A stretch of 62,848 bases of DNA, filler included, from Octopus bimaculoides (Eukaryota), in the NCBI RefSeq assembly GCF_001194135.2. It is 4 parts of 4 records of this genome, joined end to end, with 100 filler letters (N's around TTAATTAATTAA, not from the genome) between each part and the next. Parts side by side here need not be neighbours in the genome. Positions count along the whole stretch, not along the records: positions 1 to 22,699 come from NC_068993.1; 3 more parts are not named here. One strand, written 5' to 3'. The notes under the pieces were generated by a model. The model searched no databases. It was not told where the DNA came from and was given only the letters and a program-made list of their open reading frames with translations. Made by a program: the position numbers and the translations under genes. Each line of letters starts with the position of its first letter. The stretch's first letter is position 1. Shown one piece after another: positions 3,032 through 22,270 of the stretch.

Positions 3032-3208
3032 GTAAGTTTTTTTTTTGTATTTCTATTCTGTTTTGTTATTTTGTTTATCGAACGAATCACCATATTTACT
3101 AGAATATGACTTTTTTTTATTTTAATCTTTTTAAAACAAATGTAACCCTACTCTAACCGTCTCAATTCATCATTAGCATACAGAGTACATATCCTGACAC
3201 AGAGCTGC

Positions 3209-3507
3209 TCCTCCTCTTCTTCACCCTCTTCATCTTCCTCCTCTTCATCTTCCTCCTCTTCATCTTCCTCCTCTTCATCTTCCTCCTCTTCATCTTCCTC
3301 CTCTTCATCTTCCTCCTCTTCATCTTCCTCCTCTTCNNNNNNNNNNNNNNNNNNNNNNNNNNNNNNNNNNNNNNNNNNNNNNNNNCCTCCTCTTCATCTT
3401 CCTCCTCTTCATCTTCCTCCTCTTCATCTTCCTCCTCTTCATCTTCCTCCTCTTCATCTTCCTCCTCTTCATCTTCCTCCTCTTCATCTTCCTCCTCTTC
3501 ATCTTCC
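3209..3507. repeat. 15-bp pyrimidine-rich minisatellite (CTTCCTCCTCTTCAT)n with an internal gap
   Basis: Direct inspection; lies in a myotubularin intron. Confidence 0.95.
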
Positions 3508-4322
3508 CCTCTATCCCCCCACTGTCACCATCACCCTTGTCATTGTCTTAACATCTATTTTATTCATGCTTGCATGGATTAGACAAAAGAAAGTCTGGGC
3601 AGACTTCCCTTTCTGCTGCCAACCCCTGCCTATTCCCAAATGAAATAATAACCTCCCACTGTCCATTCAACGACAAACAGCCTGGACATTGCTATGCAGA
3701 GAAACGGAAACAAACCACACCATATGATTGAGCCTTTTGTTTACAAATGTTGCACAATGTGCTGAGGAAGGTCAAGAGCCTGGACACACTTTTGCAGTGG
3801 ACTGCAAGTAAATGGCAAGCAGATGTCTGCGTGAACAGGGAGGCTGTTGTTTAGCACCAGCAAATACACACGAAGACCTGGGAAAATATGAATCTACATA
3901 AATATACAAATGCATACAGACACACACACATGAGTTCACTGTATGGGACTTATTCATTTTGGAAAAAAACACGCCATGGTTTGAAGTCCCCTAGTGCAAA
4001 ACTAATTTTCCGTTTGATTTTTCATGTTATGAAGTAATCATGTGTGTCCCAATGGGTATTTTCAAATAAACGACACCCAAAAACAAAAAAGAAAAGAAAG
4101 AGAAAAAAGGAAGTCAACTATTTTTGTGCATAAAAATAATTTTTAAACACAGATTGTACCATATGTGTGCATAAAATCATTTTAAGTGAAATATATTTGG
4201 GAATAAATTGCAGTAATATAATAGGGTAGATTCTTAGCTCAAAAGGAGTGGATAATTGTCTGAGGTGTGTTGTTAAAATGAGAGTTAGTAGGAGAATGAG
4301 GGACTCTATCTTCTATATTAAG

Positions 4323-4407: not shown

Positions 4408-4596
4408 GTGATGTCATGGATCCACCCAGAGTCGCAGGCGACCATCACTCGTTCCAGCCAACCTTTGGTCGGAGTCACTGGCAAGAGGAATAAAGAAGAT
4501 GAACAATACATTCAGATGATTATGGATGCAAATGCCCAGTCGCACAAACTGTTCATCATGGATGCTCGACCCAGTGCAAATGCCATGGCCAACAAG
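4408..4596 (+). CDS. MTMR2: Myotubularin exon
   Basis: ttttcacAG / GTCAGT, 189 nt, [22 protein letters not shown]...[12 protein letters not shown]. Confidence 0.97.
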
Positions 4597-4853
4597 GTCA
4601 GTTACTCTCTTTACACATTCATGCTCGTTCTAGCCTTCTCTCTTTCTCTCTTCCTCTCTTTTAAATGAAATTCTGTGGTTTAGAAGGGTGTGTATATAGC
4701 AATAGATTGTTATCTTACAAGTATACAAATAAAAATAGGAAATAAAAGATAGGAAAAAAAATAAAGTAATATATTTTATTTTTTATATTAGTTTTTTGCC
4801 AGATGGCAAAGAAAACAGAAAGTAGTAATGCTGTCTTTTATGATATTTTTCAG

Positions 4854-4945
4854 GCTAAAGGAGGGGGGTATGAGAACGAGGATGCTTATCACAATGCTGA
4901 GCTGATTTTTTTTGATATTCCTAACATCCATGTGATGAGAGAGAG
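4854..4945 (+). CDS. MTMR2: Myotubularin exon
   Basis: tttttcAG / GTAAAT, 92 nt, phase 0/2, [30 protein letters not shown](S). Confidence 0.97.
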
Positions 4946-5286
4946 GTAAATATGACTTGTTTTTTTTTTACTTTTCATGCGTACACCTATATTCACACAT
5001 TATAACACATAGACACATAGGCAAACACACAGACAGACACACAAGCCCGATAATATACATATTTGCCCTCCTCCCACTTGCTCCAGGTCTTAATACTGTC
5101 TTCCAAACATCAACATGTTTCGGATATCTTGCATAATGACACATAATGGTTTTTTTTACTGTATACGAGTCAAAAAATCGGTCAGTTGACTTCTAAATAA
5201 ACCAAGACAATTTTGGAGGACCAAAAATTCTATGTGAACTACTGCAGGAAAGACAACAATAATGTTTGAATGTTTGCACATGTATC

Positions 5287-5475
5287 AGGACAATTACCCT
5301 TCTAGGACAATTCCCCCTGATGACAACTACCCCCTAGGACAATTATCCCCCTTGGTTAATTACTCCCTCTCCAATATATTAAAAAGTTTTAAATCATCAT
5401 CTGTTGTCCTCAGGGGTAATTGTCCTTGGGGTCGGGGTAGAGGTATTGTCCGTGGGGTGGTGGGGTAAATGTCCT
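5287..5475. mobile_element. Small foldback/MITE-like element of inverted GGACAATT(A/C)CCCC arrays
   Basis: About four direct copies at 5288-5350 and about four inverted copies at 5404-5475. Confidence 0.55.
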
Positions 5476-5689
5476 AGACTCATTTACACAACATATATAC
5501 TATATAATATGTTGGCTTATATGCCATAAAATATATTATACCACAATGTCCACAGTACTGTGTTCAACCATCAACATGTTACAATGGTCAGCTGCTTATG
5601 TCCAGTCATGACATACTCGTTATTGTAATGTCTACAAAACTGATTCCTTGATATGAAGATAAACATTCTGTTTCTCTTTCTTTTTTCAG

Positions 5690-5783
5690 TTTAAGAAAGT
5701 TAAAAGATGTGTGTTTCCCCAACATCAATGAAACTCACTGGTTGTCCAATATTGAGTCGACACGCTGGCTGGACCACATCAAG
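5690..5783 (+). CDS. MTMR2: Myotubularin exon
   Basis: ttttttcAG / GTGAGT, 94 nt, phase 2/0, (S)[31 protein letters not shown]. Confidence 0.96.
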
Positions 5784-6514
5784 GTGAGTGAACAAACAGA
5801 CTCCAAGTTCAAATTTCACCATATGTCATTGTAACAATGTTTTTTTTTTCTTTTGTAATCTCATGTGGAGGTTCATCATAAAAGAAAAAGTAAGATGTAA
5901 GATACAAAGTCAAGCAACTTTATGTGGTTCTCTCATGGACATGGTATCAAGTTTGATTACACCTGGCTAAAGTGGTGTATTGGCCGAGTCACTAAAGTGT
6001 TGGATCGATGACTTGTAGTATTTGTTCTGGATTGCTGTACTCTGAGTTCAATTCCTGCCCAAGTCAAATTTACCTTTCATCCTTTTGAAGGTCAATAAAA
6101 AACGGTACAAATCCAGGACAGTGGATTAAGGAAACTGTCTGAGAGTTGGGTGAGGTACCTTGTGGAATTTGTTCAGGGCCTTTGCATTCTGACAGCAACA
6201 CCTGAAATGACACAAGTGCAAAATGCTATCAGCCTCAGCCAGTGGCATGAAGTGTAGAAACTTACCTGCATAGACCAACTGCTGGTCTTTCTAGAAGTCC
6301 TACATGTTAATTTGATTGAAAAATAAAAAAAGAATTCATATCAATTATCTATAGAGATTGTTGTGCAGCCCTCTGGCTTGTCACTCATCAGTCAAACCCT
6401 CTGACCCATGCCAGCATGGAAAGCGAATGTGAAACGATAATGATGATGATGATGATGATGATTGTTATTCAAATGATCAAATTCCTGTTATTATTTTTTT
6501 CTTCTTGATTACAG

Positions 6515-6613
6515 CAAATCTTAGCTGGTGCTGTTCGTATTGCTGACAAAGTGGAATATTACAAGACTTCTGTATTAGTTCATTGCAGCGATGGTTGGGA
6601 CCGAACTGCTCAG
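6515..6613 (+). CDS. MTMR2: Myotubularin catalytic exon (CX5R P-loop)
   Basis: ttgattacAG / GTAATT, 99 nt, [33 protein letters not shown]; HCSDGWDRT is the signature of active myotubularins. Confidence 0.98.
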
Positions 6614-6794
6614 GTAATTTATAAATAATTATTTATGAATTTATATTTTCAGTTGGTTGTTGTTGTTGTTGTTTTAGCCTAGTCCAGCCCTGACCAAGCA
6701 GACTTATAATCAAAGGTGTTGTTCCCATTACACGCTTGTTCATTTTTGTGATTTTCAGGAATACTATAAGACTACATTATCCAATGTTTTCTTT

Positions 6795-7110
6795 CAGTGA
6801 AGGTGTGTTGCTTCGTGGTCAGGGTATTAGGATCACGGTTTTAAGGTTATGTGTTCAATTCCTGGCAGTGTGTTGTGTCCTTGAGTGAGACACTTTATTT
6901 CATGTCGCTCCAGTTCACACAACTTGCAGAAATGAGTAGTGCTTATATTTCAAAGGGCCAACCTTGTAACATTGTGTGTCACTGAGAACTACATTAAAGG
7001 TACATGTGTCTGTGGAGCGCTCAGCCACTTGTAGGTTAATTTCTTGAGGAGTCTGTTCCATTGATCGGATCAACTGGAAACCTCATCATCCTAACCAATG
7101 GCATGCCAGT
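6795..7110 (+). mobile_element. tRNA-headed SINE, family with GTGTCCTTGAGCAAGACACTT-type core
   Basis: A/B-box-like head plus core. The 3' half is shared with a minus copy at about 36640-37015; another copy is at about 58675-58910. Confidence 0.65.
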
Positions 7111-7381
7111 TAATGCTTTCTTCCTTTTTTTTTCTCTAAGAGAGGAAGATATCATTTAAAAGAGATTTGGTTCTTATGTTTAGCTGATCAAGAAATTAAT
7201 AGAGGTACCTAATGTTGATGTTGATGTTGGGGAGCCCCAATCTTTGACTTGACCTATAGTAGAGATAACCAGTCAAAGCGAGTCCTAGAACTGTGCAAGA
7301 GACAATCATGTTATTTATTTGATTCTTACCATAATATTTCTAATTGTTTGATATTCATGAGATTTTCAATTTAATCCACAG

Positions 7382-7489
7382 CTCACCTCTCTTGCAATGA
7401 TCATGCTGGATCCATATTATCGAACTGTGAAGGGGTTTGAAATCCTAATAGAAAAAGAGTGGCTCAGTTTTGGACATAAGTTCGCTCAA
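7382..7489 (+). CDS. MTMR2: Myotubularin exon
   Basis: aatccacAG / GTAAGT, 108 nt, [36 protein letters not shown]. Confidence 0.97.
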
Positions 7490-8044
7490 GTAAGTAAAGT
7501 GGAGAAAAGATGTTTGATGACATATCAAAATTAACTTTTTTGTTTTCAATTACCAGAAAATATTATTACTGAGGACAACGGTAACTTGAAGTTTGCAGGG
7601 AATTTTAAAATTGAGTCAAATAGTGAAATATTACTCAGACACGTAGATATTTCTATGAAGAAAGTGTCAAGTACTTTGAAGAAAATCAGAGCAAAATCTC
7701 GAACATTTATGAAGCTGTTTCATTGTATTTAGGTCTCAATTCTTACAACTTCCTCGTCAAGTTCAGATTTATATTTGTGTTATTTTATATCAGTCTTGAT
7801 AGTGAACACCTAGTTAAATGGATCTTATCTTCAAACCCATATATCTTGGATTACATTATCAATGTGTTCTTTTCTTTTAACTCAAAAAATTTGGAGCAGT
7901 TTTAGCTGCTATTTCTTGTATGCTGAAAATCACCATTTATGCGTCCTTATTGCATCCCTCTTTAAGCGCTATATAATTGTAGTTGCCTGCGTATAACTTA
8001 AAACAGGTTCATACATAAAATTATAATTGGGTGTTCTAGTTTAA

Positions 8045-8254
8045 CCCTTTAGCACTTAATCCGGCCTAAATATTCAGTCTATTTTATGTTAAAATAGACC
8101 ATATCCAACTTCTCACACCTACCCTACAATGTCATTCTAAAAATAAACAATCACATCATCAAAACCTCAAAGACATAAGATAGTCCCCGATTAATTCCAA
8201 ACAATGTGAATAAATAAGGATTACATTGGACAGAGTAACCTGAATGCAAAAGGG
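8045..8254. mobile_element. piggyBac-like MITE (210 bp)
   Basis: TTAA on both sides (8041-8044, 8255-8258) and CCCTTT(A/T)GCA terminal inverted repeats. A partial copy is at 10273-10388 and an interrupted copy at 55857-56240. Confidence 0.75.
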
Positions 8255-8419
8255 TTAAATATGGCCGATTAGGGAATGGCTTGATTTGTATTATAGAAGC
8301 AGATGTGGTCTCAGATATGTTGTTGTGAAACAATTTAGTCATGTTTAAGATTGAGTTAAAGTTTTAATCAAATACACATCGTTATAGGCTGAAATTCCAA
8401 TTTTCAATTTTTCTTGCAG

Positions 8420-8512
8420 AGAATCGGGCATGGTGAAGACAAACACTCAGATGCGGACCGTTCTCCTGTATTTTTGCAGTTTATTGACTGTGTGTGGCAA
8501 ATGGCCAATCAG
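8420..8512 (+). CDS. MTMR2: Myotubularin exon
   Basis: ttttcttgcAG / GTAATT, 93 nt, [31 protein letters not shown]. Confidence 0.97.
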
Positions 8513-9079
8513 GTAATTAATCTTAAAATCTGGACAATGGACACGAATTAAAATAAGAACAGTAATAAATGAGTGAAGAACGAATATACGGTGCATGTGT
8601 TTATTTGGCAAAAAAAAAAAAAAAATTACCATCCTGAAGTATAACAAAGTCTTAAAATCACTGTTCTTTAATTAATGATATGATGCAAAGAACATTAGAG
8701 TGAAATGGTTATAGATAATCACCTTCACTAATTTGGTTTGTGGGTGATTTGATCATCATATTGTGATTAAAGGGATGATAAAATACTGTACAGATTACAA
8801 GGTTAAATGTATTGAGACTTAAGAGAACTGATTAAAACTGATGTCCTGGGGTTGACTCCTTGTTGCCTTTTTAGTTCTGTGGCAGCAGCAACAGATGATT
8901 ATTTCCTGCTAGCAATATAAACACGAGTGCTTATATGCACCACAAGTCCACTTTAGAGGTTCTCTTATGTTAAATAATGCAGTATTCTGTGTTCCAACTC
9001 AACATCCACTTTTAAGTGGGGATAAAAATTACCTTTTGTATTTAATTGTTATTTTAAATACAAAAAACACATAAAAAGC

Positions 9080-9395
9080 ACCGTTCGAGCATTGCGCCTC
9101 ATGGAGACAGTGACAGGTGACCAAGACCTTTGGTGATACACTGTACATGTGTTGACCTGTCAAGCCAAGTGAGATTGTAATCGTGGCATGTAAAAAGCAC
9201 CAATTACACTCTCAGAGTGGTTGGCATTAGGAAGGGCATCCAGCTGTAGAAACCTTGCCAGATCAAATTGGAACCCAGTGCAGTCCCCCACCCCAGCTTA
9301 CCAGTTTTCAGCCAAACCATCCAACCCATGCTAGCATGGGAACCAGATGTTAAACAACGACGACGACGACGATGATGATGATGATGATGATGATG
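9080..9395 (+). mobile_element. RTE-type 3'-end element (short LINE remnant or RTE-tailed SINE) with (GAT)n tail
   Basis: Recurrent motif gagtggttggcattaggaagggcatccagctgtagaaac...caacccatgccagcatgg...gttaaacgatgatgat. Further copies at about 1510-1612, 6370-6462, 14560-14915, 15750-15900, 22370-22435, 22800-23003, 23440-23760, 24900-25100, 25450-25640, 30440-30605, 55955-56146, 60160-60611 and 61245-61383. Confidence 0.8.
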
Positions 9396-9431
9396 ATTGC
9401 CATTAATACTTCTCTTTTTGTTTGATTTCAG

Positions 9432-9545
9432 TTTCCAATTGCTTTTGAATTCAACGAATACTTTTTGATTACCATCATGGACCATCTGTATTCATGCCTC
9501 TTTGGAACATTCTTGTACAATTCTGAACAACAACGAGTTAAAGAG
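9432..9545 (+). CDS. MTMR2: Myotubularin exon (SID region)
   Basis: tttgatttcAG / GTACAA, 114 nt, [38 protein letters not shown]. Confidence 0.97.
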
Positions 9546-10010
9546 GTACAATATTCAGTTATTATTTCTCCTTGACCTCCCCCACCCTCCAACCTATTTC
9601 TGCTGCTTTCTCATTTTCTTTGTTACTCTCTCATCCCAAACTCCCAGACTTTCGTATCATTCACCTCTCTGCTGTCGCTCTGTCTGCTTTTTATTACGAT
9701 GCCTCTGTTAGAAGTGATGGAAAACCATTCAATCTGTCTGTATTCCATTACTGTTTCTTTATTGCTAGCTATCACTCTTTCTCTCTCTCTCTCTCTCTTC
9801 CTTTCTCTCTCTCCTTTCTCTCTCTCCTTTCTTTCCCTCTGCCTCTATTTCATTNNNNNNNNNNNNNNNNNNNNNNNTCTCTGATTGTTCTCTCTTACTG
9901 ACAGTTTCTGTGGAAATATTCAAAGAACACAAATTTATAGAATTCCATATTTACACTCTCTCCTCACTCGCTGATTCCTTCTAATTTTCTTTTTCTATTA
10001 TTGTATTAAG

Positions 10011-10190
10011 GAACTGAAGACAAAAACCCATTCCCTGTGGGGTTACATCAACAGCAGCGTAGAGGATTATCTTAATCCTCTCTATGCCACTTACCTAGAC
10101 CAACATGTCTTACTACCAGTTGCCAGTATGAGGCAGTTAGAACTTTGGATTGGATATTACTGCCGATGGAACCCATGCCTAAGGCCACAG
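10011..10190 (+). CDS. MTMR2: Myotubularin exon
   Basis: ttgtattaAG / GTACTT, 180 nt, [25 protein letters not shown]...[18 protein letters not shown]. Confidence 0.96.
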
Positions 10191-10394
10191 GTACTTGCTT
10201 TGTTGTTCTTAATATTCTTGTAGTTCTTTTGTAAATTTGTTTACCATATTTTTTTTTGGTGGGGGTATTTAACCCTTTCGCATTTAAACCAACCATGTCT
10301 GGCTCAAATATTCTCTGTTTTATGTTCAAACTGACCAGATCTGGCCTCTCACACCTATCCTACAATGTAATTCTAAAGATAAACAATGAGCTGC

Positions 10395-10718
10395 AGGTGT
10401 GGCTGTGTGGTAAGAAGTTTGCTTCCCAACCACATGGCTCTGGCTTCAGTCACACTGCATGGCACCTTGGGCAAGTGTCTTCAGCTATAGCCTCGAGCTG
10501 ACTGAAGCTTGTGAGTGGATTTGGCAAACGGAAACTGAAAGAAACTTGTCATGTATACATGTGTGTGAGTGTGTGTGTTTGTTAGTTCCCCACCACCACT
10601 TGACAACCGGTGCTGGTGTGTTTATGTCCCTGTAACTTAGTGGCTCGGCAGAAGAGGCCAATAAAATAAGAACCAAACTTAAACAGAAAAAAATGTACTG
10701 AGGTTGATTTATTCAACT
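10395..10718 (+). mobile_element. tRNA-derived composite SINE (GGCTGTGTGGTAAGAAGCTTGCTTCCCAACC family)
   Basis: A/B boxes, central GCACCTTGGGCAAGTGTCTT, internal microsatellite and a second module. Further copies at about 24290-24510, 26085-26240, 43425-43527, 48184-48410, 50905-51270, 51470-51690, 51925-52050, 53325-53480, 53680-53825, 56540-56850 and 59570-59790. Confidence 0.8.
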
Positions 10719-10975
10719 ATCAGTCTCTTTTTGCTGAACCACTAGGTCATAGGGTTGTAAACAAACCAACACCAGTTGTCAGGTGGTAGTGTGGATACAC
10801 ATAATACACACACACACACACACAACACACAATTGGCTTCTTTCAGTTTCCGTCTACCAAATCCACTCATGAGCCTTTGGTCAGCCAGAGGCTATAATAG
10901 AAGACACTTGCTCAAGGTGCCACACAGTGAGACTGAACCTGGAACCATTTGGTTGGGAAGCAAGCTTCTTACCAT
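10719..10975 (-). mobile_element. Inverted copy of the same SINE family
   Basis: Reverse complement aligns with 10405-10662. Confidence 0.8.
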
Positions 10976-11040
10976 ATGGCCAGTTGTGAAAATTATTATT
11001 TTTTTAATCTTTTTCTTTTCCCCCCCCATTTCTCTTTTAG

Positions 11041-11238
11041 GAACCAATCCACCTCCGGAATAATGTGTTGCTGAAGCTGAAGAACCATTTGCAGAAGGAG
11101 TATGAAAGTCTGATGAAAGAACAAGAAAGCAGGAATGCCCGTGGCACAAGCAGTAGCAGCAGCAGCCAGGCTGTGAATTCTACAGCTTCAATGTCTTCAA
11201 GTTCAGCTCAGAGGGTAGCGTCTCCCGTTAGCACCTGA
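11041..11238 (+). CDS. MTMR2: Myotubularin terminal coding exon (coiled coil plus Ser-rich tail)
   Basis: tttctcttttAG acceptor, 198 nt to TGA, EPIHLRNNVLLKLKNHLQKEYESLMKEQESRNARGTSSSSSSQ...RVASPVST*. Confidence 0.93.
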   Translation, partial: EPIHLRNNVLLKLKNHLQKEYESLMKEQESRNARGTSSSSSSQAVNSTASMSSSSAQRVASPVST

Positions 11239-11479: not shown

Positions 11480-11578
11480 CATACATTGTTACATACTCAT
11501 ACATGAAGCATAAACACTCATATATGTATATGTGTATACATATGTATGTATGCATGTATATGTATATATGTATATTTG

Positions 11579-11625
<47 letters not shown>

Positions 11626-11645
11626 GTATATATAAATAAAAATGT

Positions 11646-11679
<34 letters not shown>

Positions 11680-12046
11680 ACATGTGTGTGTATATATATG
11701 TGAGTGTATATGTATGTGTGTATATATGTGTATATATATTCATGTATGTGTGTGTATATATATGTATGTGTGTGCATATGTATGTGCGTGTGTGTGTATA
11801 TATGTATGTATATATTTGTATGTATATATATATATGTATGTATATATATATGCATATATATATATATGTATGTATGTTTGCATGTATGTATGCATGTATG
11901 TCTGTATATATGTATGTATGTATATATTTGTATGTATATATATATATATATATGTGTATGTATATGCATATATATATGTATGTATGTTTGCATGTATGTA
12001 TGCATGTATGTATATATATATGTATGTATGTATATATTTATGCATA

Positions 12047-12088
<42 letters not shown>

Positions 12089-12590
12089 GTATATGTATGT
12101 ATACATTTATGTGTGTATGTATATATGTATGTATACATATATGTGTGTATGTATATATGTATGTATACATATATGTATGTACATATATATGTGTGCATGT
12201 ATATATGTGTATGTATGTATATATATATATACATATATATATATATAGTGTTTATGTATATATATATGTATATGTATGTATATATGTAGGTGATTATATG
12301 TATATGTATGTATATATATATAATATATGTATATATATTTATGTATGAACTCCACTCCTGTATGTTTGAAGATCTATTTTGTAAATATTTAAAAAAACAA
12401 AAGCCTTAACAAATAACAATGAAAAGCTGCAAAAAAAAAAAAAAATCAACATCACTTTCTTATTTGCGCTATATATATTAATCCCATACACATACGCACA
12501 TAAACATTTATAGGTCACGCATATACAGACACACACATGTAAATCTATCTGTTTGTCTGTCTGTCTGTCTGTATGTATGTATACACACAT
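11480..12590. repeat. About 1.1-kb compound (TA)n/(TG)n/(TATG)n microsatellite tract
   Basis: Direct inspection; source of the many YI/CV/HT-repeat ORFs. Confidence 0.97.
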
Positions 12591-13139: not shown

Positions 13140-14094
13140 ATTTTTGCATGCATATGAATACATACAAAGTTGAAGACTTGGTAGTATCTTATATACACAT
13201 GTAGAAGAGATGTGTGTGTGTGTGTGTGTGTGTATTCAAGTGCAATGGATGCCATGTAGCAACTGGGATTTCACTGATGGCATTCAATTTCTTTGTAATG
13301 TACGAAATACACACACATGCATGCATACAAATATACCTTCACACATACACACACAGACATTACATGCACACGCTTGTGTTTGAAGTGTTTAGTGTGAGAT
13401 TGGTATGTACATCTATGCATCTCTGAGTATATTCACACGCATACACACATGAACATAGACATATTTTTACATATGCACACACACACACACACACACATTA
13501 CCATCAAATATACATTCACTATATGTATGTATGTGTGTGTGTGTAATGTTTGAAAGAGAGAGAGAAACTAGCTGTTTGTGTGCAAATGAATCTTATCATA
13601 TCTCTCAACTATTATTTTAATTAAAAGCAGTGGATATTTCGAATAAGAACCATGGAGATTAAATGCATTCTGGAATTCATTTCCATTTCTCATGGTTCCA
13701 CATTCAAATTCCATCCAGATGGGGTTGATAGAATAATTAACCCTAAATGCTTAATTGGAATCAATCTAATTTTAACTATTCTTTCATCCCACCAAATACT
13801 TATTGTTCAATAATTACTCTTTTAATTACCATTACAAAAAAAAAAAACCCAAAAAGCAAACAAAGACCCCAAAATTCAGTGCTTCATTTTTTTTTTTAAA
13901 TAATTTTATACAGCATTTTGTGTGCAAGCTTTTGTGTCAACAATAAATATATTTTATCTTAAATTTTACATGTTTAACCTTATTTATTGTAAACAAAAAT
14001 AAATCTATTAGAGATTTAGAAAACATGTTTTTTGAGTTGACACTGTGAACATCTTCATGCGTTTGTGTCACAAGATGAATCTAAGAGGAATAAA

Positions 14095-14520
14095 CATGAG
14101 AGATGCTTTGCCTGTGTGTGAACAGCCATGCTACATGGCAGTAAAACATGGGCTGTGACTGCTGAGGACATACTTAGGCTTGAAAGAAATGAAGCTAGTA
14201 TACTTTGCTGGATGTGCAATGTTGGTGTGCATGTATGATATAAAGTTTTAGCTCTTGAGAGAAAAGTTGGGCAAAAGAGGCATCAAATGTGGTGTGCAAG
14301 AGAGACGACTCCACTGGTACGGTCATGTGATGCATATGGACAAGGACAGCTGTGTAAAGAAGTGCTGAGCTCTAATTGTGGAGGGAACGTGTGGAAGAGA
14401 CAGACCCAGGAAGATGAGGTGGTAAAGCATGGTCTTCAAATGTTGGACCTCACAGAGGTGATAACAAATGGCTGAGACCATTGGTGATATGCTGTGCTTG
14501 AGAAGACCCAGCAAGCCAAC
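14095..14520 (+). mobile_element. RTE-clade LINE, decayed ORF C-terminus
   Basis: Reads ...TAMLHGSKTWAV...LERNEAS...QERRLHWYGHVMHMDKDSCVKKC with stops and frameshifts; same family as 30700-32005. Confidence 0.8.
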
Positions 14521-16508
14521 ACTGCTAATGTCATGTAAATGGCATCCATGAAAACATAATTATGGCCATTGGTGGTAGCATGATCGTTTGAGCATTGGGC
14601 CCCATGGAGGTGATGACAAGTGACTGAGACCTTTGGTGATGTTCTGCTGAGAAGACTTGTCAAACCAGGTGAAATTGCAGTGATAGTCATGACTGTTGCC
14701 AGTGTCACTGTAAATGGCACCCTGCTGGTGTCGTGTAAATAGCACCCGTAAAATCATAGTCATATGGCACCTGTGCTGGTGGCACGTAAAAGCACTCATT
14801 ACAGTCTTGGAGTGGTTGGCTTTAGAAAGAGGTCTGGTGCAACTCCCTGGTTTACCAGTCTCAGTCAAACCGTCCAACACACACCAGCATCCAAAGTGGG
14901 TGTTAAATGATGATTTACCTTGAGCCCCCAAGGCTTTAAGGTTGAGCTTCCATGTCTGGGATTTCCTCTCTAATTCCACTTGAGATTCAGCTACAAGAGA
15001 ACTAGATTGTCCATAACCAATCTTAACTATTCTGAGTTAGTCTGTAGAACTGAGGAAGGGGGCTGAGGACTGAGCCTTGACCATCTACCTTCTCACTGAA
15101 TTTGACACTGAAATCATTTTTTGATACTCATTGCATCTTTGTACATAGCTTTTGATATCTCCCATCTCTCACAGGCCATTTAGTCTTCATCTATGGACTG
15201 CCTTATATTTTATGTTCCTACCTCTCAGCCTCCCTGCAACCATTTCATCTCACTTTCATCTCCTATACTGAACTTTCAACTCACCTTTTCCCCTGTATTC
15301 CTCCTCGTTTTGTCCAAGGCAGCCCTATCCCCATAACCCTTATGTATCTCTTGACTTTGTCCCTGGACTGTGCATCTCTTGCATCCCACCCCCACCTCCT
15401 TAACCCACTCCTATTTCCTCCACCTTTCCCTCCGACCAATATGCACAATTGACCATATCTCCAGTGTTTCCCACTCACTGCATTCCCCTCTATCCCACCT
15501 CTCTTCATCTTCCACTCCTTTCACACTTACCTCTCTAATCCTCTCTATCACTCATATTCACTTCCCCATTAACTTCCTGATACATGTTTTCCAGCAGGGG
15601 TGACCATGTATCTTCACAGTGAGGCCCCCATTTCCCTGTATTTCTCTTACCATTTTCTAACCTCTCATCACCTGGCATAAAACCACCTCCATTAATTCTG
15701 CAGCCCTTCAGTTGTGAGTTACTGCTATTAGTGCCATGGAAAAAGCACCAAGTACACTCTGTAAAATTGTTGCCATTAGGAAGGACATCCAGTTGTAGAA
15801 ACCATGCCAAGCAAGACGTTGGAGCTTGGTGCAATCCTCTGGCTTTGCTATTTCCTCTTAAACATAAAACCCATGTCAGCATAAAAAAATGGACATTAAA
15901 TGGTGTGGTTAACAACATATATCCATCCATCCGTCCATCTTTTCTGTCCATTATTCCCGGGAGAGTTGTGGGGGTAGGGTCCTTAGGCATCTCCTCCATA
16001 GGGTCTAAGAGCTAACCATCATTAAACTTTCCAGCTGGATTTCCAAGCATGACCAGCTGAGACTATTTCCAATCATGTAGTTCTGATCTACCCCTAAATC
16101 TCCTGCTAATAGTTTCAGCTTGAATCTCTCTCCTCAGTGACATTCTACTCATGTCCGTAGCATTAGAACTGTGACCTCTCAAAGCAAAGAAGTAGCTGCT
16201 TAACCTCCAGATTAGTTATGTGCCCCCTTTGACTAATATTCCAGAGACCACATGGAAGGGCCCCATTTCAGTCAGGGTCCCATTTCAGTCATATCCATCC
16301 AGCCAACCAACCAAAATTAACATTGAAGGAAAATCGCTTTACTACCATTTCTCAAGTGAAGAGCTCGAATTCTTTTAATGCTTCTTGGAGGTAACTGGTT
16401 GCTGGGATTGTTATTCGTGTTGAAAGTTAAGTACATGACTGTTTCAGGTTTTTCATTTATCTTGAAAGCTGAGCTGTTTCATATAATTTATCCTGCATTA
16501 CTCTAGGC

Positions 16509-17168: not shown

Positions 17169-17174
17169 TTTATT
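17169..17174 (-). terminator. Candidate poly(A) signal of the His/Cys-rich gene
   Basis: First AATAAA on the minus strand, about 285 nt after the stop codon. Confidence 0.4.
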
Positions 17175-17459: not shown

Positions 17460-17615
17460 CTACGAACCTTTTTTCGTCACAGTAATAGTGGCCGCTGGGT
17501 TTGGACAATGGTGATCACAACAACCATGACAATTTGCAGCATGACAATTTGAGCAAGGATTGCAGGGGCACGAATGACATACTGGTGTCACGTGGATATG
17601 AGGTTCTGGTGGATT
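17460..17615 (-). CDS. His/Cys-rich repeat protein, terminal coding exon (51 aa + TAG)
   Basis: TACTAAT branch point (17645-17651) and a very long poly-Y tract ending ctcAG. Encodes NPPEPHIHVTPVCHSCPCNPCSNCHAANCHGCCDHHCPNPAATITVTKKGS*, the same Cys/His/Pro bias as exon 1. Confidence 0.82.
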   Translation of the reverse strand, partial: NPPEPHIHVTPVCHSCPCNPCSNCHAANCHGCCDHHCPNPAATITVTKKGS

Positions 17616-18545: not shown

Positions 18546-20124
18546 AAAGCAGCTTATTGTATGCTGTTGTCCCTAGTATTTGACTGGTACTTTACTTGAT
18601 CAACCCTGGAGATATGAACGAGGCTGGTCAAATGCTGCAAGAGGTCTGCCAATGTTCTATTGCAAGAGCATCAGAACCATTAACTGTCCTGAACTGTCAA
18701 GGGGAATCACACCCCCACTAAGTATGAGAAAAGGATCCAAAACCTTACAAAAGGTTATTGAATATAGAAAATGTGTAAGGTTTAAGAATAATTATCCTTT
18801 CTAGTATCTTTAACCCTTGCGACACACAGGTGTTTTGGTATATGGATCCAAAAAGACCAAAATGTTTTCCAGTTGTGATTTAAATTGATAGGGGCATGTA
18901 GAAAACAAAGGATAAAGTGCCTAAAATTACTTCATTATAAAAACTTCTAAACAGTACAATACTTCTATCACAATAAGAAAACCTAAAACACAATATATGT
19001 AAATAAAAGTATCTTTGTGAAAAAAAAACAAAAAAACAAGCAAAATATCTACTGAGAGACGATCTCTGATTGGCTCTTACACTTCAAAACCAACCATTCA
19101 CAACATTTATTCCATCGGCCTGATCAATTGGCCCAGTTATACCAATAGCGTCTAATGGAGGGAGATGGTCTAGGAAAAGGCCAAAGTGATGGTCTAGGAA
19201 GAGGCTAAAGTGAGGGACCCTGTTATGAAAAAACAATTCAATAAATTAGCTAAAATGCAGTTTGTACATGTGCCAGGTTGGGGTACTACTCATGCTTTCC
19301 AGAATAAGCACTGTCTGGTGGTTGGAGACCTGATGCAAGGTGGCATGATGGAATTGTACTGTAGAGAACCACTAAAACGAAAGGGACAGACTTGAAAGAG
19401 AAATTCGATGTCCAATATAATTAGGAAAGTGGAAAGTCAAAAGTAAAGAGCTTTGCCAAGGTTTTCAAGCATGAGGTATCCCTGGCTGGGGAGGAGTGTA
19501 TGAAATGGAATAATAACTGTATGCTTCTCTCTTAATGATGCCAAAAATACAAATGTATGTGCTATAATGAGGATACTGATCAAGGAGAATAATGCACAGT
19601 GATGGAGGTGGTGGTGGGTCTACTCAAGACAACAAAGGTAAAGAAGGCAGCTGGACTTTCAAGAATGAGCTTTGTGTGTGTGTAAAAGCCACATGTAGTG
19701 TTGCCACATGTAGTGTTGAGGGTTATGTGCCACCAGTGGAGGTGAGAAGTCAAGCATGAGGTACCAGAAGTTAAGGTGGTGGAAGTGACAACACAGTGAT
19801 GCAGGTCTTTCAATCAGCCTCTTTCTTGGATGAGCAGTTTAATTCCTAAAATATGTTGGAACTTGTGGCCCTCTTCCATTATTTTCACCACCGAACTACA
19901 TGAGAAATTTTGTAAACAAATACAAATGAATTTAGAAGTGCAGAAAAGTAATGCATGCATACATACATACAACTGCTCACATATATCGCAAATAGAACGT
20001 ATTATATATAAATCAAACCCCCACCCCCCACCACCACCAGGTCGCAAATATCACAAGTTGAACATATATTAACATATATTAACATTTATTATATATATAT
20101 ATATATATATATATAGTGACTCAC

Positions 20125-20848
20125 CTGGCACTGTTTGAATGGCAAGTTGTGGAGCATTCGGGCAGTGGCATAGTTTCACTGTGGTTGGCTCACACTGTTC
20201 TAAATCAGATGTTGATGCGTCATTCATATCGACTGTGACATTCTCTGGGCATGGGCATGGACAAGGTCCGCAAGGCCCACAAGGTCCGCAGGGCCCACAA
20301 GGCCCGCAGGGTCCGCAGGGTCCGCAGGGTCCGCAGGGTCCGCAGGGTCCGCAAGGTCCGCAAGGCGAGCACTCCTTGGGCGCTACTTCAATTGAGTAAG
20401 TTTCACATGGTTTCGGTATCAGTTGTGATAACATGGTGGCCACCTTTGTTTGTTCCGCTGCTACCACAGCCTGTTGAGTCGCAACTACAGCCTGCTTGGC
20501 AGCTACTTTCGCTTGGTGTTTGGCTATCATAAACTTACAAGGCAGTTTGTGTATGCAGACACAATGGCTGTGACAATGACCATGACCGTGGCAGTGACCA
20601 TGACTGAGACAGTGACCATGACTCAGGCAGTGACCATGAAAATGACAGTGACCATGGCCGTGGCAGTGACCGTGTCCGTGGCAGTGACCATGTCCGTGGT
20701 GGCAATGACCATGTCCGTGGTGGCAATGACCATGTCCGTGGCAGTGACCATAACCGTGACAGTGGCCATGATGTCCATGACAGTGATGATGGCATGGCTT
20801 ATGGGTGTGCATAATAATAGAATCACATGTTACAGAATCACAACTCAT
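20125..20848 (-). CDS. His/Cys-rich repeat protein, coding exon 1 (241 codons + 1 nt)
   Basis: 724-nt open frame. In-frame TGA five codons upstream of the ATG. Upstream branch point ACTAAC (20955-20960), long poly-Y tract and CAGCAG acceptor (exon start 20915 or 20912). Donor CAG|GTGAGT at 20124, phase 1. Repeat units vary at synonymous positions. Confidence 0.85.
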
Positions 20849-21097
20849 GTTTCTGCTAGTTCATGCAAAACGTCAAAATAGATAGTAATTTTCTTCTGCA
20901 AGTTGACACAATCTGCTGGTAAAAAAAAAACAAAAACAAAAATAAAGGAAAAATGTTAGTGTACATACATTGTATACATGCATGTATATATGTATGCATG
21001 TATGCATACACACATAGGTTTATGCAAACCAATCACAAAAATAAATTTCTTTTATATACATCCAAAAAATTCCATATGTGAATGTGTGTGTCTGTGC

Positions 21098-21176
<79 letters not shown>

Positions 21177-21995: not shown

Positions 21996-22071
<76 letters not shown>

Positions 22072-22270
22072 ATGTGTGTGTGGTGTGCGTGTGTAGTATA
22101 TATATACAGAGCCGGTCCTAGGGTAGCTGGCGTCCCGGGTGACTGCTCAAGTTGCCGGTACCTTGAGCCGGCTGAGCCAGCCCAGTAGACACACACTCAC
22201 ACACGTACGTACGTAGTACATACGTGTGTATGTATGTATGTATGTATGTATATGGGGCGGAGGTAAAGAA
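21645..22270 (-). promoter_or_regulatory. Candidate promoter and non-coding 5' exon(s) of the His/Cys-rich gene
   Basis: CpG-rich stretch with GGGGCGGAG (about 22254), TATATATATA (22097-22106) and candidate minus-strand donors GTAATT (21946) and GTGAGTAT (21644). TA runs are common in this genome, so the TATA evidence is weak. Confidence 0.4.

Follow-up and report, generated by a model that had tools for sequence, protein, structure and literature searches.

Histidine-rich metal-binding segments and structural proteins built from CGP repeats are both already known. The Mst(3)CGP family is testis-specific (PMC3439415), its members Mst87F and Mst98C resemble the outer dense fibre (ODF) proteins of mammals (PMC12584897), and ODF1 combines an N-terminal zipper with C-terminal PCX repeats (PMC6906709). 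In mammalian sperm, Zn bound to outer-dense-fibre thiols protects them, and its removal allows stiffening by disulfides (PMC6321397). Among metal-binding segments, the His-loop of ZnT7 binds two Zn in a His-dependent manner with a dissociation constant (Kd) of about 10 uM (PMC10409766), and Hpn, which is rich in His and Cys, sequesters Ni and in vitro also binds Zn, Cu and Bi (PMC4671568). Here we analyze a stretch of the Octopus bimaculoides genome (assembly GCF_001194135.2; 62,848 nucleotides (nt) in four joined parts, filler included; hereafter the window), in which a gene on the minus strand of the first part (NC_068993.1) very probably encodes a periodic Cys/His array, followed in the same exon by a predicted heptad helix and a CGP array. 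The gene is unannotated and probably lineage-restricted. Among the proteins and literature searched, the strict Cys1-His3 hexapeptide period is new, as is the way one exon combines it with a heptad helix and a CGP array.

The Cys/His array is carried by an open reading frame (ORF) at 20848..20069, obtained by reverse-complement translation of the minus strand, and is the first of three in-frame repeat modules within one exon. The exon, its modules and a candidate exon downstream of it are arranged as follows.

20849..20959, minus strand: probable 3' splice region and 5' untranslated region, read from the sequence, with putative signal function
20125..20848, minus strand: coding part of the exon, from the ATG (20848-20846) through residue 241 and the first base of codon 242
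Residues 1-18: N-terminal segment
20564..20794, minus strand, residues 19-95 (77 amino acids): Cys/His repeat array, from translation, counts and Tandem Repeats Finder
Residues 96-103: the segment CVCIHKLP
20420-20539, minus strand, residues 104-143: helix predicted by AlphaFold2, containing four heptads
20432..20515, minus strand, residues 112-139: the four heptads Q-A-x-V-A-x-x, of 21 nt or 7 amino acids each
Residues 144-162: linker
20264-20362, minus strand, residues 163-195: (CGP)11, Tandem Repeats Finder period 9, 10.9 copies
Residues 196-201: CPCPCP, which together with (CGP)11 occupies 20246..20362, minus strand
Residues 202-241: acidic, Cys-containing tail
20119..20124, minus strand: splice donor GTGAGT, after GTGCCAG, in phase 1, a full match to the consensus MAG/GTRAGT
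17460..17615, minus strand: candidate downstream exon, a Cys/His-rich open segment 2.5 kb downstream

Residues 19-95 comprise 38 His, 19 Gly, 13 Cys, 3 Ser, 2 Leu, 1 Tyr and 1 Phe, arranged in 13 Cys-initiated units of the form C-H-x-H-G-H and its variants. Eleven of these units are full (6-7 residues) and two are short; CHGHGH is one of the recurring units, CHSH is the last unit, and the C-H-x-H-G-H pattern places His at alternate positions. Tandem Repeats Finder reported the array at 20577-20771 with a period of 18, 10.5 copies and 82% matches. The original prediction, which had described about 12 tandem Cys-initiated modules at 20564-20794, was exact in its coordinates and close in its number of modules; it gave no strand, and the coding strand is minus. 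The other two repeat modules of the exon, its splice sites and the probable further Cys/His-rich exon had also escaped that prediction. Its count of 13 Cys stands, whereas its figure of about 39 His becomes 38. It had also held that the units change length by whole codons only, and the DNA units of 12, 18 or 21 nt agree with this.

Variation among the repeat units is concentrated at the synonymous sites of a single frame. In pairwise comparisons of the eight 18-nt units of the array, differences at codon positions 1, 2 and 3 numbered 24, 19 and 64, and the differing codon pairs in the Cys-His frame were synonymous in 47 cases and non-synonymous in 36, against 0-25 synonymous pairs in the other five frames. 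Variation among the eleven CGP units is confined to third positions (TGC/TGT, GGA/GGG and CCT/CCC, all synonymous), and the four heptads keep Gln1, Val4 and Ala5 with varied codons (CAA/CAG; GTA/GTT/GTA/GTG; GCT/GCG/GCA/GCC). None of the 241 codons of the coding frame is a stop, compared with 6-25 stops in the other five frames, and splice and start signals lie at the edges of the ORF. As a negative control, we used the minisatellite behind the strongest database match to the array (P0232, at locus L003). There the frame drifts, differences are spread over the three codon positions as 858/656/648, and 88 synonymous stand against 1058 non-synonymous pairs. Because the three arrays vary mainly or only synonymously, because a single frame is free of stops and because the control minisatellite fails the same test, the array is very probably translated and under amino-acid constraint, as part of a real coding exon. 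The original prediction of selection at the protein level is thereby supported.

The exon-1 product has 241 amino acids and a mass of 25.4 kDa, with 43 His and 37 Cys (18% and 15%) and 2 Tyr. Upstream of the ATG, a branch-like CTAAC (20959-20955) is followed by a long T-rich tract and by candidate AG acceptors that would start the exon at 20915, 20912 or 20895. A mini upstream ORF of two codons, ATGAACTAG, lies at 20864-20856 ahead of the ATG, and an in-frame TGA is found at 20863-20861, 15 nt upstream of it. These upstream signals, the TGA included, make MSCDSV... the likely N-terminus. At the other end of the exon, the donor CAG/GTGAGT (20125/20124) falls on the exact border between the protein-like sequence and a (TA)n microsatellite.

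In a six-frame scan of the window, the only other Cys/His-rich open segment was 17615-17460, on the same strand. This candidate exon is preceded by TACTAAT, about 30 T and two AGs, which would place its start at 17615 or 17605. It reads (E)PHIHVTPVCHSCPCNPCSNCHAANCHGCCDHHCPNPAATITVTKKGS and then either stops at a TAG (17462-17460) or is cut by a GT donor that follows 17468; AATAAA signals stand 3' of it at 17174 and 17105. Only the second AG (17605) allows an in-frame join to the exon-1 donor, giving a product of 289 amino acids and 30.4 kDa with 50 His and 46 Cys, whereas from the first AG (17615) the frame differs and ends after 33 codons. Bounded by the internal donor, the exon 17605..17468 would be 138 nt long, with phase 1-1. 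On these signals it is plausible that the segment at 17460..17615 belongs to the gene and that the product has about 289 amino acids.

AlphaFold2, run on the single sequence without an alignment, predicted the helix at residues 104-143 with a predicted local distance difference test (pLDDT) score of 84-91 and gave values below 50 elsewhere; because the mean is 47.6, the model is useful for the helix only. A heptad periodicity can also be read directly from the residues of this helix. More than 65% of the chain is predicted to be disordered. Kyte-Doolittle hydropathy peaks at 1.31 when averaged over 9 residues and at 0.86 over 19 residues, the latter in the Ala/Val helix. By hydropathy, the exon-1 protein contains no signal peptide or membrane segment, and its N-terminus has no hydrophobic core. 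This absence supports a protein that stays intracellular. The earlier view that it is not secreted gains support from the same N-terminus and from the in-frame TGA upstream of the ATG.

The (CGP)11 module amounts to eleven overlapping C-G-P-C motifs, and C-G-P-C is the active-site tetrapeptide of thioredoxin. Read as G-P-C, the module is also a formal Gly-X-Y array placed 20 residues after the heptad helix, a layout reminiscent of coiled-coil-nucleated collagen-like trimers. The CGP array scores 16.8 bits with the Pfam Collagen model, below the cut-off of 27.2, and the product lacks the signal peptide expected of collagen-like proteins, which are usually secreted. From the arrangement, the heptad helix might nucleate a triple helix of the collagen type.

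We compared these features with those of the described systems. Like ODF1 (HSPB10) and the Mst(3)CGP proteins Mst84D and Mst87F, the protein is Cys-rich, appears to be intracellular and contains a tandem CGP (PCX) array, here of eleven perfect units followed by CPCPCP. ODF1 likewise has a helix, there of the zipper type, on the N-terminal side of its repeats (PMC6906709). Unlike those proteins, it carries a His-rich array, has no HSP20/alpha-crystallin domain or Pfam match, and shows no similarity to them outside the tripeptide repeat, either as homology to ODF1 or Mst(3)CGP or through a family model.

The His-loops of ZnT7 (SLC30A7) and of ZIP proteins are disordered H-G-H-x-H runs that bind Zn2+ (PMC10409766), and by analogy the present array may act in the same way. 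However, those loops belong to membrane transporters, have about 20 His and show neither periodic Cys nor a strict 6-residue period, whereas no multi-pass membrane domain is seen here (maximum 19-residue hydropathy 0.86). Hpn, Hpn-2 and the C-terminus of HspA from Helicobacter pylori share the extreme richness in His and are small, cytosolic, multimeric and Ni-sequestering, with few Cys. They differ in being bacterial and unrelated in sequence, in clustering His as homopolymers and pairing Cys as CC, and in having no regular C-H-x-H-G-H period, helix or CGP module. Taken as an analogy, the resemblance of the array to known Zn/Ni-binding His-rich segments is supported by both its composition and its regular spacing.

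Metallothioneins are likewise Cys-rich, intracellular and unstructured when metal-free, and carry motifs of the CxxC/CxC type, which are present here not only in the CGP array but also in the tail and in the candidate exon. They differ in size and composition, at about 6-8 kDa with about 30% Cys and almost no His (PMC4101491). The present product, at 25.4 kDa, or 30.4 kDa with the candidate exon, lies above the metallothionein size range (<10 kDa), departs from it in composition and matches no metallothionein model in Pfam. The His-rich proteins of squid beak, Nvjp-1 of Nereis jaw and the suckerins contain Gly-His-rich repeats and harden their material by metal or covalent cross-linking; they are secreted, rich in Tyr/Ala and essentially free of Cys. 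In contrast, the octopus protein has no signal peptide or hydrophobic core, only 2 Tyr in 241 amino acids, and a Cys every 6-7 residues of the array, which contains 1 Tyr and 13 Cys. The distinction from squid-beak repeats drawn in the original prediction is therefore upheld.

Our preferred reading, to which we assign a probability of about 45%, is that the gene encodes an intracellular, mostly disordered, self-associating protein that would bind many Zn-type ions through Cys and His and could be hardened by disulfides. We infer its metal binding, oligomerization, cross-linking and tissue by analogy with the systems above. The helix would make the chains associate, and in the reducing cytosol Cys thiolates and His imidazoles would hold many Zn2+-type ions. 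With one Cys and three His, each unit would offer four ligands (soft or borderline), which would set an upper limit of about a dozen bound ions; on this analogy, a role of the array as a poly-metal binder is plausible. Bound metal would also shield the 37-46 thiols from oxidation, and upon metal removal or in oxidizing surroundings, CGPC-type cysteines would form disulfides and the material would harden, much as has been described for the Zn-loaded outer dense fibres of mammals.

The presence of the heptad helix and (CGP)11 in the same exon shifts the analogy from a free metal buffer to cross-linkable, Zn-loaded sperm-tail proteins. Because the other known carriers of CGP repeats are ODF1 and the Drosophila Mst(3)CGP proteins, an accessory-fibre protein of the sperm flagellum is our most specific guess, and the protein may belong to the sperm tail. 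In the octopus, sperm contain nine outer dense fibres together with a fibrous sheath (PMC11753710); in the literature searched, we found no protein described for either structure.

Several points weigh against this reading. What the protein has in common with ODF1 and Mst(3)CGP is a tripeptide repeat, with no homology that can be demonstrated, and low-complexity segments rich in CGP or His have evolved independently many times. The protein also contains more His than Cys, an unusual ratio among known sperm-tail and keratin-associated proteins. As for the gene model, an AATAAA at 20090 permits an unspliced version ending at the stop codon 20071-20069, and the candidate downstream exon can be joined through the second of its two AGs only.

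If the preferred reading holds, the array would exceed in density any other regular Cys/His ligand array that we could find in natural proteins, and would be a ready template for metal-binding or metal-cured peptide materials. The protein would be a candidate for the matrix of octopus sperm accessory fibres, where it could serve to test whether Zn-protected thiol hardening evolved twice, and the gene would be one built almost wholly from three codon-periodic minisatellites yet under amino-acid constraint. If the gene is not expressed, it is merely a curious ORF. We propose only tentatively, and with clearly less confidence, that the protein represents an undescribed intracellular poly-metal class, in which a strictly periodic Cys1-His3 array, joined to a helix for self-association and to a redox array of (CGPC)n, would form a metal-gated, disulfide-setting material in cephalopod cells; every 6 residues of the Cys1-His3 array may provide roughly one tetrahedral site for Zn or Cu. 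If this were true and the protein were part of the outer dense fibre matrix of octopus sperm, it would amount to an independent invention of the mammalian Zn/thiol hardening chemistry.

Among the competing explanations, a soluble cytosolic metal store or buffer, similar to metallothionein or Hpn and with no structural or cross-linking role, survives best, although we regard it as unlikely. The Cys/His and CGPC arrays would then take up Zn, Cu, Cd or Ni; the digestive gland and haemocyanin-making cells are examples of where this might occur. The density and regular spacing of the ligands are consistent with such a store, Hpn provides a precedent as a His/Cys-rich multimeric sequestering protein (PMC4671568), and metal in the octopus digestive gland is held partly on ligands other than classic metallothioneins (PMC4101491). 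However, neither the size of 25-30 kDa nor the composition (18% His and 15% Cys), nor a helix resembling a coiled coil, fits the definition of a metallothionein. No metallothionein Pfam model matched, and the known CGP arrays occur in structural proteins of sperm rather than in metal buffers.

It is also conceivable that there is no gene at this locus and that three adjacent minisatellites (18, 21 and 9 nt) leave one frame open by chance. Stop-free repeat arrays make long ORFs, and because they open several frames at once, an open frame alone is little proof; nor is a period divisible by three, because the window contains a 15-nt intronic minisatellite (3208-3512) that is non-coding. The top database match of the array is itself a non-coding minisatellite, and no orthologue or transcript was found. 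Against this, the synonymous-site bias appears in three independent arrays of one shared frame, and the 125 non-repeat codons are open as well (p about 0.0016, from the window stop-triplet frequency of 0.050). Furthermore, the ORF has a consensus donor at one edge and a branch site, an acceptor and a start context at the other, and the exon is an island of guanine-plus-cytosine content (0.50, compared with 0.376 in the window and 0.21-0.33 in the flanks). We therefore consider the chance explanation improbable.

The searches for relatives bear on the same question. Two word-indexed searches of about 5.8 billion proteins returned no relative, and none of these proteins had more than one or two Cys/His units. 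The whole-exon query gave 85 matches, all to CGP- or GP-rich segments of unrelated proteins. The N-terminal 161 amino acids gave 9 weak matches to short HGH runs, and matches to the His array were short HGHGH/HCHGH runs in transporter-like or trypanosome proteins. An exhaustive HMMER search of 1.84 billion representatives yielded 3417 matches, none of them related; the best 150 of the 3417 with a reported match all centre on residues about 160-196, and none reaches E<1e-30. Every significant match in these protein searches reflects the composition of the CGP array.

Family and structure databases gave a similar result. A Pfam scan of the exon-1 protein at E up to 10 returned Collagen only, below its cut-off; the N-terminal and C-terminal parts matched no Pfam family, and the metallothionein, HSP20/alpha-crystallin and transporter models gave no match. 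In a PDB sequence search, BclA and collagen peptides aligned to residues about 157-196 only, a compositional likeness, and the sole alignment to the array was a weak one to the ZnT7 His-loop (8j7t, E=2.8). An exact-sequence look-up of the ORF returned no record, a scan of JGI metagenomes with back-translated peptides matched 140 stretches with no relative among them, and a literature search for the motif, or for a Cys/His-rich sperm or metal protein of cephalopods, found nothing specific.

These negatives weigh little in favour of the chance explanation. As a control, a conserved exon of the myotubularin-related-protein-2 (MTMR2) gene in the window retrieved exon-sized fragments only, at no more than 90% identity, and no annotated cephalopod protein. 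Because the databases cover the source taxon so poorly, the absence of an orthologue is weak evidence. Two further loci (L001 and L002) contain MTMR orthologue exons at 72-79% DNA identity; no His/Cys ORF was found within their 10-kb flank, and the region downstream of MTMR lies beyond it.

One database protein, P0232, shares DSVT-D-I..H at its start with the octopus protein and was considered as a relative, but was rejected. Its locus, L003 560-890 (ENA ERZ26695388, contig ctg134298), is a degenerate, frame-drifting 12-nt minisatellite of the GTCACGGACAYN type that lies immediately next to the 3' end of a retroelement ORF. Translation in one frame yields CHGQGQCYGLGH..., from which a gene caller made the 225-amino-acid "protein" P0232. 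This case is a caution for database matches to His/Gly/Cys repeats.

The least probable explanation is a pH- or redox-switched condensate, the pH-switched form of which the original prediction had also raised, in which the 38 array His would titrate near pH 6 and turn a nearly neutral chain strongly cationic (calculated array net charge about +3 at pH 7, +19 at pH 6 and +35 at pH 5), so that it assembles or dissolves in a manner comparable in principle to charge-driven His-rich cephalopod proteins; the predicted disorder of more than 65% of the chain accords with this, but its basis is purely compositional, no reflectin-type motif or family match was found, cytosolic pH is rarely in the required range, and a charge switch alone leaves the strict Cys periodicity unexplained.

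The neighbouring gene on the plus strand encodes an MTMR2-like phosphatase, with eight exons seen within 4408-11235 and numbered here in the order in which they lie there.

About 4408-4600, plus strand: MTMR2 exon 1
About 4855-4945, plus strand: MTMR2 exon 2
About 6520-6613, plus strand: MTMR2 exon 3 (catalytic)
About 7380-7490, plus strand: MTMR2 exon 4
About 8400-8500, plus strand: MTMR2 exon 5
About 9426-9545, plus strand: MTMR2 exon 6
About 10000-10200, plus strand: MTMR2 exon 7
About 11041-11235, plus strand: MTMR2 exon 8

Joined together, the exons match PDB 1lw3 (E = 5e-163); the first of them matches PF06602 proteins. The Cys/His gene is distinct from MTMR2 and lies about 6 kb from it, in convergent (tail-to-tail) orientation. 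The 15-nt minisatellite, CTCCTCTTCATCTTC, is located in an intron of the MTMR gene and consists of two blocks (3208-3336 and 3386-3512) of about 8.5 copies each, 94-99% identical and split by an assembly gap of N. Runs of N marking assembly gaps occur at about 934-1450, 2178-2189, about 3337-3385 and about 9855-9880, with none within 7 kb of the Cys/His gene.

The last MTMR exon is immediately followed by a compound microsatellite of (TA)n and (TATG)n, about 830 bp long (11520-12347), which lies between the two genes. Similar (TA)n tracts are found at 1-111, 20090-20115 and 21099-21176, and a (TG)n tract at 21999-22094. Apparent retroelement debris lies between and within the MTMR2 and Cys/His genes, including reverse-transcriptase-like ORF fragments at 14036-14472 on the plus strand. 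Dispersed copies resembling short interspersed nuclear elements occur at 9082-9137, 14433-14488 and 14585-14640, and at 6376-6477 and 9296-9397, and a further dispersed repeat at 10381-10507 is inverted relative to its copy at 10875-11001.

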